Of a DNA stretch of 64,000 bases, positions 20,654 to 29,544 are shown one piece after another (position 1 is the first letter of the stretch; the number at the start of each line of letters is the position of its first letter). Made by a program: the position numbers and the translations under genes. The DNA is taken from the IMG/VR virus record IMGVR_UViG_3300036715_003906, positions 186,001-250,000 of that record; one strand, given 5' to 3'. The notes under the pieces are model-generated. The model was not told where the DNA came from. It was given only the letters and a program-made list of their open reading frames with translations, and ran no database searches.

Positions 20654-20693
20654 GAGTGACCTCGTACTCCCGGACGCTCCATCGAAAGGTTCG

Positions 20694-20764
20694 TGGACCT
20701 GGGGGGAATCGAACCCCCATCATCGGCTTGCAAAGCCGTGATTCTCCCGTTGAACTACAGGCCC
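20694..20764 (-). tRNA. tRNA-Ala(UGC)
   Basis: G3.U70; loop TT TGC AA. Confidence 0.9.
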
Positions 20765-20891
20765 AGAGGGGGCCCAAGGCGACGTGCCAGGGGCCCGGAT
20801 GATCACTAAGGCCGTTATGCGTGTCGTCGCGCCTGCCTTCAGGGACACGTTGGTGAACCGGGGTGAATGCTCATGACCACCCTGTACACCG

Positions 20892-20963
20892 TGGACCGGC
20901 CGGGACTCGAACCCGGACATCTGCCGTGCGAAAGCAGCGTGCTCCCTTTGGCACTACCGGCCC
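20892..20963 (-). tRNA. tRNA-Ala(CGC)
   Basis: G3.U70; CTGCT-TT CGC AC-GGCAG. Confidence 0.88.
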
Positions 20964-20979
20964 TTGCTGACCCGTAAGC

Positions 20980-21052
20980 GGTGGAGCCGGCGGGGATCGA
21001 ACCCGCCCGCGGCCGGGACAGGGTGCCCTTCTGCCGCCCACCATGAAGCCCC
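20980..21052 (-). ncRNA. Stand-alone tmRNA-TLD-like RNA (Ala acceptor; no D stem, anticodon or tag ORF)
   Basis: GGGGCT...GCGGG TTCGATC CCCGC CGGCTCC ACC; GCGGC/GCCGC helix. Confidence 0.6.
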
Positions 21053-21056
21053 AGGC

Positions 21057-21114
21057 GGTCCCCGGTTTCGGAATCGAACCGATTGCCATGGCGACCCTCC
21101 CTGGGCCGGGGACC
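21057..21114 (-). ncRNA. Miniature tRNA-like RNA lacking an anticodon loop
   Basis: GGTCCCCGG/CCGGGGACC; TCGG TTCGATT CCGA; stub GCC AT GGC. Confidence 0.5.
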
Positions 21115-21300
21115 TGGACTCACCCCTACCCGGCCGGGTGGGGGGCTCGCCTGTCGACGTCAGGGACTCGAACCCCTCGCGCCCCCGGGTAGAGAGCGCG
21201 CCTTCCTGGAAGTCGATGAGCCCGGGTTCTCGGCTGCCCCCCAGGGCCTGGGGCTCGAAGCGTCACCCCGCCCGTACCGGCGCGGGGGGCCGAAAGATTT

Positions 21301-21347
21301 GCAACGACAAAGGGAGTTTGAGTGTAGTCCGCGATCGGATTCACTGT
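21301..21347 (-). ncRNA. Minimal Y-RNA-like gene
   Basis: CAGTGAAT..CGGACTACAC..CTTTGTCGTTG. Confidence 0.55.
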
Positions 21348-21350
21348 CCG

Positions 21351-21422
21351 CGCTTCCGCCGGGAGTTGGACCCAGTACATCCGGTTTAGGAAACCAGCGC
21401 CCGCGGCCGGCGGGACGGAAGC
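21351..21422 (-). tRNA. tRNA-Arg(CCU), atypical T and D loops
   Basis: GCTTCCG/CGGAAGC; CTGGT-TT CCT AA-ACCGG; T loop TCCAACT. Confidence 0.7.
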
Positions 21423-21423
21423 A

Positions 21424-21663
21424 TCAGGGCCCGAAGGCCCCGGGGAAGAGGATGCACAAGAGGCCCGAGAAGTAGAGCCCGAGCCCGAGGGCGACCCCCA
21501 GCATGATGACGTTGGTGGCCTGCTCGCTCTCGGCGACCTGGGACTCCCAGGCCGCACGCTCCTCGGGGGTGGCCCGCTCCCACCACGTCCGGTGGAGGCG
21601 CTGGTGCTTCGGGTCCGCCTCACGCTGCCTACGGGCCCTGCTCGACCACCCATCCATGACCAT
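21424..21663 (-). CDS. Small membrane protein
   Basis: C-terminal hydrophobic helix. Confidence 0.55.
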   Translation of the reverse strand: MVMDGWSSRARRQREADPKHQRLHRTWWERATPEERAAWESQVAESEQATNVIMLGVALGLGLYFSGLLCILFPGAFGP

Positions 21664-21675
21664 GAGCCCTTTCAG

Positions 21676-21759
21676 CGGAAGCAGGAGGAGTCGGACCTCT
21701 CCCCCGGAGGGGTCAATCGGGTAGCGACCGACGGGCCCGCCACCGGGCCTTCAGCTTCC
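21676..21759 (-). tRNA. tRNA-Ser(GCU), atypical
   Basis: GGAAGCT/TGCTTCC G73; GTCGG-TC GCT AC-CCGAT; long variable arm. Confidence 0.68.
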
Positions 21760-21767
21760 AAGCGTCG

Positions 21768-21850
21768 CGGAGCGCGGAGGAGTCGAACCCCTGTCACAAG
21801 GGACCCCCGGTTTTCGAGACCGGTGTCCCGCCGCCGGGACGTCACGCTCC
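21768..21850 (-). tRNA. tRNA-Ser(CGA)
   Basis: CCGGT-CT CGA AA-ACCGG; long variable arm; G73. Confidence 0.85.
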
Positions 21851-24610: not shown

Positions 24611-24682
24611 TGGCACCCCGTGTGGGAATCGAACCCGACCCCGGATTTCAATCCAGTGCTCTACCGATTGAGCTACCCCGGC
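24611..24682 (-). pseudogene. tRNA-Phe(GAA)-like with unpaired acceptor stem
   Basis: Canonical D arm and TTGAAA loop, but GCCGGGG cannot pair with ACGGGGT. Confidence 0.6.
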
Positions 24683-24740
24683 GTCGCCACACTGCATCGC
24701 GTTCACCCCCGCGCAGGGGAAGGGCCTGTGGCAAGCCCCT

Positions 24741-27077: not shown

Positions 27078-29544
27078 GGTCGAAGCCCTCCCGCTGGGCC
27101 GCTTCCTCGCGGGCGACCCGGAGGGCGTAGGCCACGCGGGAGGAGGCGATCTGGTGGTAGACGGGGTCACGCTCGATCCCGACGAAGGAGAAGCCCTCCT
27201 CCGTTGCCGCGACCAGGGTGGATCCCGAGCCCGAGAAGGGGTCGAGAACCGTGCCCCCGGGGGGCGTGATGAGCCGGCAGAAGTACCGCATGAGCTTCAC
27301 GGGCTTCGTGGTGGGGTGGTGGTTCTTGCTCTTGCTCCCCTGCGTCTCCTCCCACTCGGGCTCGGGGCAGGTGCAGTGCGGCTGCCCGAACTTGACGTGG
27401 CCGCAGAGCTGACACCGACGGTTGCTCTGGGTCGAGACCGTCTGCTCCACCAGCGTGTGCTGGGCCCTCGCCTCGACGTCCTCCTCGAACCCCTGGTTGC
27501 GCTCCCGGGTCGTGATCTTGCCGCAGTAGAAGAAGGGGACGTCCACCTCGGGCTCGAAGGTCTGGAAAAAGCGGGAGGCGCCGCCCCCATCACCGTAATC
27601 GACACCTGCGTACCCGGGAACGCCGGGGAAGTCCCCCTTGAAGCTACGCTGGGGCTGCGTGCGAGCCAGGGCCCGCGGACCCCCACTGCTCTTTTCCACA
27701 CCGCTCTGCTCGTCGAGGGCGCGGACGGGGCACCCCTCCTCGCACTCGTAGACGTCCACCTGCTCGTACGGCTTCCGCTCGGACGTGTAGGGCTTCCCCT
27801 CCCCGCCGTAGTCGTACCGGAGCTTCCCCTCGTACCGGTTCATGAGGGGCACGGGCGCCACCCGCTCCCCGACCTTCCGGCACGTCGGGCTGTGGGATAG
27901 GACCAGGTGCGCCGGCCAGCGACCCGACGTGGACGTAGGCTGCGCCTGTGCGGGATTCTCGGACCCCTCGCGGTAAGGGGACCAGAGCTTGCCCGACCCG
28001 CCGACCGGGGGCTCCGTCGTGCTGACCCGGCAGGCGTCGATGTGGAGGGCGCCCGTGCCGTGCTCCTTGACGTTCGCCGCCACGGTCCCCCGGAGCGGCT
28101 TTCGGATGAGCCACCAGTCCTCGACCGCCGGCTTGAGGGATGTCCCCCACCCCTCCCACTCCCCGGCCCGCTCGGGCGCCTTCCCCTTCGTGAGCGCCTT
28201 CGCCACGTTCAGGGACTTGGGAAAGCCGCTGTTCCCCGTGATGAAAACCTTGCCCTTGCGACGGGCCACGAAGGCCCCCTTGGGGACGCGGAGGCACCAG
28301 ACGTCCCCGGCATAGAACTCGGGCGGAGAACGGAGGTTGAAGGTCGACAGCGTGGTGTCAGCGTGCCGCGTGACCCCCACGTAACCCCCCTCGCGCGCCG
28401 CCCGGGCTGTGTTGTGCCCGCGCCACCCCACCAGGGAGAGGAGCGTCGTGAACCACTCCCGATCCTCGGGGGACTTCTGCTCCAGGGACATGCTGCCGCC
28501 CCCCCGCTTCAGCGAGGGCTTCGACGTGGTGCCATCTCCCCGGACCGCGGCCCGGAGGAAGGCACGTTTCTCCCCGAGGGTCATGCCCCAGAGCAGCTCA
28601 TAGGTCGGGTGCTTGTCCGGGAGATCCCGACGAATACGCTCCGCCATGTCTCCCGTGAAGGACCAGGTGATCATCTGGTAAGGACGCGGCCCTTCGTGCC
28701 GGGACTCGTAGGTCCGATCGTAGGCGTACCGGCTGTGCTTGCCCCCCGCGTCCCCAAGGAGTGCGTCAATCTCGGCCACCTTGTCCGGGTTGACCGAGGA
28801 CTGGTAGATGCGAACGCCGCGCCCCTTGCGGTCGTACCCACCCTCCGTCCAGACCCACCCGAGCAGAGAAGCGTACTCCTCACCTCCGATCCCAGGGCCC
28901 TCGTGAAGCCCCGCGAGCGGGAGGCGTTTCGGGGACGAACGGGATACCTCGGAGACCTCTGCCACGCGGTACGCGCTCCACCGCTTCCAGAGGGAGGTCC
29001 TGTGCCAGACCCGATGGTTGGGCGTCAGGAGCTGATCGGTGTCGGCGTTGCGCAGGACCACGAGATCACCCTCCCAGGGCGCGCGGAAGGTCTCCTCGAC
29101 AGCCGCGAGAGTGATCGCTTCGGTCCCGGGGTCCCACTGGGCCACCCTGTCCCCCACTCGCACATCCAAACCCTTGATCCACCCCGCAGGGGTCAGCACC
29201 TCGACGTCATCCGTCAGGCACCCGAAGACGTGGCCGATCCGGTCGCGGATCTCGAAGCCCGCGTTCTCCAGGGCGAGAGCCGTCCAGTGCGAGGTCCGAG
29301 GCAGGGCCCAGAACAGGCCATGGGCGCCGGGCTTCAGGATGCGGAAGCACTCCCGGGCGACCTCCTCGAGGAAGGCCACGAACCCCTCCCGGGCCGAGCA
29401 AGAACTGTCCCCGAAGGAGTCCCACTCCTGACCCATGAAGGAGATACCGGCTGGCTATGGGGGATCCGTGACGATGGAGTCCACCGAACCCGTCGGGAGG
29501 CGACGCAGAACGTCGAGGCAATCCCCAAGGATAACCTTGTTCAT
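27049..29544 (-). CDS. N4/N6 DNA methyltransferase with intein; in-frame TAG in motif IV
   Basis: GDCLDVL..L...SVDSIVTDPP*PAGISFMG; HPTTKP..LM; VLDPFSGSGST. Confidence 0.85.
28231..29220 (-). mobile_element. Intein (330 aa) with LAGLIDADG endonuclease
   Basis: CLTDDVEVLT..GW start; LLGWVWTEG and FLRAAVRGDG; VWCLRVP...ITGN/S end. Confidence 0.92.

Follow-up and report, generated by a model that had tools for sequence, protein, structure and literature searches.

A tRNA-like unit of alanine identity in a jumbo-phage tRNA array is probably a tRNA-Ala(GGC) relic, and TLD-only RNAs appear common in phages

Mycobacterium phage DS6A is listed in PMC4131195 and PMC11915505 as carrying a 'TLD only' tmRNA, in which TLD denotes the tRNA-like domain. 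According to the same sources, a similar TLD-only molecule strongly inhibits tmRNA in E. coli, 'perhaps acting by titrating SmpB'. We located the DS6A element at positions 28478-28560 of JN698994, where it is laid out as an acceptor stem, CAAUGGUGGUCGAC, a P2a helix, GCAC and a T-arm.

RNAs resembling the DS6A element are found in many viral contigs. A loose pattern that fits both DS6A and the unit discussed below matched at least 119 viral loci. When a pairing filter was applied and canonical tRNAs were removed, at least 74 matches remained, including at least 60 unique ones with perfect stems. More than 50 unique DS6A-like elements of ~76-83 nucleotides occur in IMG/VR viral contigs (loci L143-L259), and this count is a lower bound. 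Most of the matches listed have the layout acceptor, (G)AAUGG-UUUCGAC, P2a, an A-rich segment, a small CC..GG hairpin, P2a', GGAC and T-arm. In a seed of 24 sequences, 98.6% of cells pair, and every one of the six P2a pairs, none of which the filter had required, has changed in a compensatory way. The resulting covariation score of 0.82 compares with 0.17 for shuffled and ~0.1 for slid controls. Most family elements are stand-alone, and some are within tRNA clusters (L232, L147, L160 and L223). ARAGORN either misses these elements or mis-extends them into long spurious tmRNAs, as in L156 and L168. TLD-only RNAs being known in concept from DS6A, their wide occurrence in uncultivated phages appears to be what is added here: they appear more widespread than is indicated by the available text of PMC4131195 and PMC11915505, which names only DS6A. 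If DS6A-like TLD-only RNAs are common, phage interference with host ribosome rescue becomes testable in many systems, which is more consequential than the single unit to which we now turn.

This unit lies in a window of 64,000 nucleotides, the whole stretch of DNA that was analyzed, which is part of a GC-rich, metagenomic IMG/VR viral contig of 251 kb. We assign the contig to a GC-rich jumbo phage because, at this length, it is rated only ~53% complete by CheckV. A minus-strand array at ~14.3-25.7 kb of the window holds 32 tRNAs called by ARAGORN and a full tmRNA (Table 1), and all tRNA-model matches of the entire contig fall inside the window. The full tmRNA had been reported in the original prediction, and it is real. 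Patterns of sigma-70-type promoters and intrinsic terminators were not found within 20600-21800, which would be consistent with read-through transcription of the array.

Table 1. Positions of the tRNA-like unit, of its parts and of other features, numbered within the window except for the TLD-only loci
Feature	Position	Strand	Description or support
tRNA-like unit, 73 nt	21052->20980	-	Acceptor stem, stemless G-rich loop, GC hairpin, T-arm, A-C-C end
5' acceptor strand GGGGCUU (nt 1-7)	21046..21052	-	6 of 7 positions pair with nt 64-70
Stemless loop CAUGGUGG(G) (nt 8-16)	21037..21045	-	Occupies the site of the tRNA D-arm or of the D-loop analogue of a TLD
Irregular GC-rich hairpin (nt 12-44) with CAC cap	21009..21041	-	Replaces the anticodon arm; MFE folds
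T-arm (nt 46-64)	20989..21007	-	Stem GCGGG/CCCGC, loop UUCGAUC, optional sixth G-C pair
3' acceptor strand CGGCUCC, discriminator A and encoded CC	20980..20989	-	
Full-length phage tmRNA	14303..14654	-	RF00023 116.8 bits; tag ANDNVALVALAA
tRNA with 6-nt anticodon loop, called '(ga)'	24611-24684	-	
tRNA-Ser(GCT), apparently genuine, missed at default	21675-21759	-	ARAGORN -ps; tRNA-Sec model 28.9 bits
tRNA-Arg(CCT), genuine, missed at default	21350..21422	-	ARAGORN -ps; RF00005 28.0 bits
Degenerate tRNA-like unit, Asp slot	21153..21224	-	ARAGORN call only at 80% threshold
Degenerate tRNA-like unit, Trp(CCA) slot	21057..21144	-	ARAGORN call only at 90% threshold
tRNA-Ala(CGC)	20891..20963	-	ARAGORN; RF00005 54.3 bits; 16 nt downstream of the 73-nt unit
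tRNA-Ala(TGC)	20693..20764	-	ARAGORN; RF00005 64 bits
Papain-family (C1) cysteine protease gene	19685-20653	-	Embedded in the tRNA array
tRNA with 8-nt anticodon loop (4-base anticodon UCGG)	18853-18929	-	RF00005 45.3 bits
HNH endonuclease-like ORF inside the tRNA array	18346-18825	-	Weak Pfam matches: HNH_3 22.9 bits, below cut-off
Pth2-type peptidyl-tRNA hydrolase homolog	~61723-62004	+	PF01981 28.4 bits
TLD-only example, L155	7631-7712	-	Alignments A7, A8; model R1
TLD-only example, L253	6686-6766	+	Alignments A7, A8; model R1
TLD-only example, L147	3031-3110	+	Alignments A7, A8; model R1

The original prediction described the unit as having ends of the form GGGGCT.../...GGCTCC-ACC with G3.U70 and no D stem, and pairing analysis confirms this description on the minus strand. 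The acceptor stem has six base pairs between nucleotides 1-6 and 65-70 (G1-C, G2-C, G3.U70, G4-C, C5-G and U6.G), followed by a U.C mismatch at position 7. On its intact acceptor and T-arm, the unit has the full set of alanine identity elements, namely G3.U70, A73, G1-C72 and G2-C71. No cloverleaf layout provides a D stem, there is no anticodon arm, and the best layout forms 6 of the 9 pairs of the D and anticodon stems. ARAGORN calls the unit only at its 80% threshold, with a forced 4-nucleotide anticodon and an 8-nucleotide loop, and RF00005 gives only a local match to the T-arm (10.7 bits). A short capped helix had also been proposed in the interior. A GC hairpin with a CAC cap can indeed form there, but its folding energy is no better than that of shuffled sequence (z = 0.05; thermodynamic folding overall, z = 0.05 to 1.2).

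The unit is not a chance match, because it is in register with the closely packed tRNAs of the array and has identical boundaries in a ~92%-identical relative. It starts 4 nucleotides past the end of the upstream unit and ends 16 nucleotides before tRNA-Ala(CGC). The Rfam tmRNA model places the 5' start at 21062, a start that we rejected because a G65A change in the relative breaks pairing in that frame and improves the frame starting at 21052. Nucleotides 21057-21062 are the 3' end of the upstream unit, and our own covariance model of the TLD-only family, R1, aligns the unit end to end in the 21052 frame. Megablast of the region against isolated phages returned no match, the exact 5' 20-mer of the unit had no match among viral contigs, and blastn of the unit with its flank against four related phage records returned matches to the T-arm only.

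One indication of where the unit comes from is its position. Two related jumbo phages, G002 and G003, were reached via the papain-like protease gene embedded in the array. Their tRNA arrays follow the same order as that of the window, and neither contains a homolog of the unit. The order in G003 is Arg(CCT)-Asp-Asp-Trp-Ala(CGC)-Ala(GGC)-Gln-Ala(TGC)-Thr(GGT)-Thr(TGT)-Gly(TCC)-Gly(GCC), and the alanine genes of G002 run Ala(GGC)-Ala(GGC)-Ala(CGC). The window has Arg(CCT), a degenerate unit, a degenerate Trp-like unit, the 73-nucleotide unit, Ala(CGC), Ala(TGC), the protease, and then Thr(GGT)-Thr(TGT)-Gly(TCC)-Gly(GCC). The unit thus occupies the Ala(GGC) slot, and the window is otherwise without tRNA-Ala(GGC). 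A decayed tRNA-Ala is the outcome that the original prediction had named beforehand as speaking against it, and it is the one to which this syntenic position points. The unit is also the last of three consecutive non-cloverleaf units, and no Asp, Trp or Ala(GGC) tRNA was detected in the phage. The degenerate unit in the Asp slot aligns weakly to the tRNA-Asp genes of the relatives.

The synteny is anchored by tRNA-Arg(CCT), whose anticodon loop is conserved with G002 and G003. This tRNA has an odd T-loop, UCCAACU; its counterpart in a closer relative (run X5, see below) has a canonical T-loop and is called there at the ARAGORN default. Homologs of the protease at <=64% identity number more than 330, many of them on contigs of 300-490 kb, and the gene is hence useful for marking this group of huge phages. 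An isolated phage carries one distant homolog, with an endolysin annotation. A protein search for intermediate relatives found nothing between 64% and 100% identity. Protease-anchored synteny across viral and metagenome contigs did recover relatives, most of them without a tRNA array beside the protease.

The two ends of the unit point to the same gene as its position. Among the aligned alanine tRNA genes, both the 5' hexamer GGGGCT and the exact T-loop TTCGATC of the unit recur specifically in tRNA-Ala(GGC) of G003. The interior has no detectable similarity to ten tRNA-Ala interiors (z from -1.9 to 0.2), so the case for a tRNA origin rests on position, length and the two ends.

We therefore regard the unit as probably a non-decoding relic of the array's third alanine tRNA gene, that of the GGC isoacceptor. 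Its upper half is intact, with the G3.U70 acceptor stem, A73 and the T-arm, and its lower half, comprising the D and anticodon arms, would have been replaced by an irregular GC-rich hairpin of similar length, leaving it unable to read codons. The acceptor and T-arm form the recognition unit for tRNA-end processing, and acceptor/T-arm minihelices with G3.U70 are known substrates of AlaRS. With the alanine-identity acceptor and T-arm intact, processing and charging are still probable: the relic would be transcribed together with the rest of the minus-strand array, excised by tRNA-end processing enzymes that recognize these arms, completed to CCA and, by analogy with the minihelices, probably charged with alanine.

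A relic of tRNA-Ala(GGC) is suggested by the synteny, by the GGGGCT and T-loop sequences common with G003, by tRNA length, by the setting among three non-cloverleaf units in a phage without Asp, Trp and Ala(GGC) tRNAs, and by the failed TLD tests described below; the lack of a significant constraint signal and a C at the psi55 position of the close relative point in the same direction. Several observations count against it. Simple neutral decay does not predict a near-perfect acceptor and T-arm around an unrecognizable interior. The interior is TLD-like, with a stemless loop carrying AUGG at nucleotides 9-12, a helix in the place of P2a and similarity to DS6A. Changes in the close relative preserve pairs and include no indels, while the adjacent Trp-like unit diverges by 20% with indels. 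Moreover, genuine TLD-only elements also sit in phage tRNA clusters, and location is not exclusive evidence.

The original prediction took the unit to be a stand-alone TLD without a tag reading frame. In its present form, this explanation holds that the unit is a divergent TLD, an RNA of ~76 nucleotides that would be alanylated and would compete with host tmRNA for SmpB or at stalled ribosomes. We consider it unlikely, even though the concept itself is real, as DS6A and more than 50 covarying elements in viral contigs attest, some of these within tRNA clusters like the unit. The precedent of DS6A and the inhibition of tmRNA in E. coli, as given in PMC4131195 and PMC11915505, make such a role conceivable, and the unit has the topology given in PMC3968760: an Ala-type acceptor, a T-arm, a stemless loop with GG and one helix before the T-arm. 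The GG shortly past the acceptor strand, which that source gives for the stemless D-loop, is present in CAUGGUGG. AUGG starts at nucleotide 9 in the unit and at nucleotide 10 in DS6A, and only 2 of the 147 canonical tRNAs in these arrays have a TGG starting at nucleotides 9-12, whereas DS6A and every tmRNA have one. An alanine-identity acceptor and a canonical T stem-loop are likewise features of a TLD, but they are common to tRNA-Ala and to tRNAs.

Every quantitative test of family membership failed for the unit. With its interior deleted, RF00023 scores the unit at 21.8 bits (gathering score 47). It scores the window's own tRNA-Ala(TGC) at 29.5 bits, the tRNA-Ala genes of related phages at 30-33, and 11 of 16 TLD-only loci, which pass the gathering score, at 49.8-74.5. 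R1, which was built without the unit, gives the unit 26.7 bits, compared with 49.5-79 for non-seed members, 29-41 for tRNA-Ala and 26-31 for other tRNAs; the window's tRNA-Ala(TGC), at 37.4 bits, is again above the unit. RF02544 has no match anywhere in the genome at E <= 10. The motifs UUCGAC, at the junction of the loop and P2a, and GGAC, before the T stem, which are the best conserved of a TLD and nearly invariant, are absent from the unit, which has GCGGC and GCGG in these places. Both are present in the Rfam consensus, in 6-7 of the 8 distinct tmRNAs tabulated and in the family consensus, with DS6A having UCGAC and GCAC. The conserved inner hairpin of the family is missing as well. In the position of P2a, which closes the interior one nucleotide before the T stem, a GC helix of 5 base pairs could form, with 5 of 6 pairs aligned by R1; there is a single relative, in which those pairs are unchanged.

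What resemblance there is concerns DS6A alone. DS6A is the best blastn match of the unit among 50,697 phage genomes (E = 0.01), and the interiors of the two are similar at p = 0.009-0.014 when full interiors are compared against real genomic 39-mers, and at 0.0004-0.0012 when spliced. A motif common to both, CA(A)TGGNGG ..., matches DS6A alone in IMG/VR. Against 51 family members, however, the median z of the interior is -0.37, versus 2.27 for a control member. As far as these comparisons go, the unit is outside the known TLD-only kind, and its likeness to DS6A stands alone. Its location in the Ala(GGC) slot next to two decayed tRNAs, the mismatched seventh acceptor pair and the C at the psi55 position of the relative also weigh against a TLD, as does the phage's full tmRNA, which would itself be antagonized by a tmRNA inhibitor. 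If a TLD or decoy were nevertheless the correct explanation, it would mean that a tag-less trans-translation decoy can arise in phages from a tRNA-Ala gene.

An origin of the unit from the phage's own tmRNA by internal deletion was rejected, since the acceptor and T-stem sequences differ, and the sole 'significant' spliced alignment of the two was a spurious end-gap match. Recycling by Pth2 had been suggested in the original prediction. A Pth2 homolog does exist, but it is encoded 40 kb away from the unit. The homolog is directly upstream of tRNA-Leu(TAA) (62035-62110), the only plus-strand tRNA. An SmpB gene was not found in the 251 kb examined, which belong to an incomplete genome.

The 3' end of the unit, which was originally called tmRNA-like, does not discriminate a tmRNA from tRNA-Ala(GGC). 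Its exact 3' 25-mer is found at 66 genome loci. It does end tmRNAs in Burkholderiales, and is a tmRNA end in Pandoraea, Polynucleobacter, Cupriavidus and Alcanivorax, but it is equally the ordinary end of tRNA-Ala(GGC) in Terriglobia, other Acidobacteriota and one Micrarchaeia MAG; the 3' 27 nucleotides of the unit are identical to acidobacterial tRNA-Ala(GGC). A G3.U70 acceptor and a 'tmRNA-like' 3' end are therefore insufficient for annotating a tmRNA domain, because tRNA-Ala(GGC) can share this 3' end and the Rfam tmRNA model scores tRNA-Ala higher.

Two prophage-type IMG/VR records contain partial tmRNA 3' ends with the same 25-mer (L008:798-837 and L009:6985-7082), adjoining a conserved 'GGTTACCTCGGTTACC' repeat. 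These ends are probably remnants of the attachment sites of islands that had integrated at ssrA. They and the occurrence of the 25-mer twice in several Pandoraea genomes, a pattern of ssrA-integrating islands, would be the grounds for taking the unit as a piece of a bacterial tmRNA or tRNA-Ala gene that the phage carries as an attP core, which we regard as very improbable, given that such a core would carry only the 3' part of its target whereas the unit has a matching 5' acceptor strand at exact tRNA distance, that the unit is in register within an array whose order relatives conserve, and that G002, a 448-kb phage with direct terminal repeats, does not show the pattern of an integrating element.

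A close relative of the phage gives some indication of how the unit has evolved. It is represented by Logan contigs, ~92% identical to the window, from independent freshwater and lake metagenomes (runs X5 and X6). Contigs from six DNA runs yielded this one divergent lineage only, and hence provide no covariation power. The unit of the relative differs by four substitutions and no indels, has the same 73-nucleotide boundaries and is still non-cloverleaf. G65A converts U6.G65 to U6-A65 in the acceptor stem, and A24U converts an A.G mismatch to a U.G pair in the hairpin. C58U lies inside the T-loop, and U53C is at the psi55 position of that loop. The psi55 position is universally conserved. Together the four changes break no pair in the 21052 frame and improve two, which would suit a functional RNA, including a TLD; 12-14% of random sets of four substitutions are equally structure-friendly, which is not significant. 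Similarly, the unit diverges by 5.5% compared with 8.3% for the region (P = 0.27), and the constraint signal on the unit is not significant.

The upstream Trp-like unit differs from that of the relative by 15 substitutions and 3 indels, which at 20% is fast (P = 0.0003), and its called identity changes in the relative. Two other comparisons with X5 stand out nearby. The 125-nucleotide spacer between the degenerate block and tRNA-Arg(CCT), at 21225-21349, is exceptionally well conserved, with 3 changes, or 2.4% compared with 8.3% regionally (P = 0.006); neither an Rfam match nor a promoter pattern was found in it. At 20722-20869, X5 has 293 other nucleotides in place of the 146 between tRNA-Ala(TGC) and tRNA-Ala(CGC), marking an indel hotspot.

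That the unit remains free of indels while its neighbor decays fast could mean that the phage retains it as a non-decoding tRNA-like element whose role lies outside trans-translation, which we think quite unlikely. Such an element might act as processing 'punctuation' that lets RNase P and 3' nucleases release tRNA-Ala(CGC) from a polycistronic transcript, or possibly as a decoy whose acceptor stem attracts host factors acting on the 3' ends of tRNAs. The tight spacing on both sides fits such a role, as does the selective integrity of the acceptor and T-arm, the very parts recognized in tRNA-end processing, around an unrecognizable interior. Yet conservation is not significantly above background, plain spacers separate other tRNAs of the array, and G002 and G003 lack a homolog.

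About equally improbable, in our estimate, is a functional combination of these ideas, in which the unit would be an alanine-accepting mini tRNA-like RNA that is derived from tRNA-Ala, has converged on the TLD layout and is used by the phage to divert SmpB, EF-Tu, AlaRS or a host factor attacking the 3' ends of tRNAs, as a decoy. If true, phages would have evolved a second class of mini-TLD, separately from the DS6A-type family.

Set beside known systems, the unit shares features with several of them. DS6A likewise has a G3.U70 acceptor, an identical 3' strand, CGGCUCCAC, and CA(A)UGGUGG right after the acceptor strand, and DS6A and the TLD-only family have, like the unit, a GC helix closing a segment of ~20 nucleotides before the T-arm and no tag reading frame. 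Unlike DS6A-type elements, the unit is without UUCGAC, GGAC and the A-rich/CC..GG inner hairpin, and it is 10 nucleotides shorter. The jakobid mitochondrial tmRNA (RF02544) is similar in concept, being an alanine-identity TLD without a tag reading frame (PMC3590771), but RF02544 does not match here and most jakobid forms are two-piece and permuted. AlaRS minihelices share with the unit a coaxial acceptor/T helix of 12-13 base pairs with G3.U70 and A73; those are synthetic, whereas the unit is natural and its charging is predicted by this likeness. The pseudo-tRNA genes of phages resemble the unit in syntenic position and orientation, tRNA length, an alanine acceptor, a canonical T-arm and, here, two degraded neighbors. 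Compared with them, the upper half of the unit is nearly perfect and its lower half fully unrecognizable, and its interior, with a stemless GG loop and a single helix, looks more like a TLD than like a cloverleaf with random mutations.
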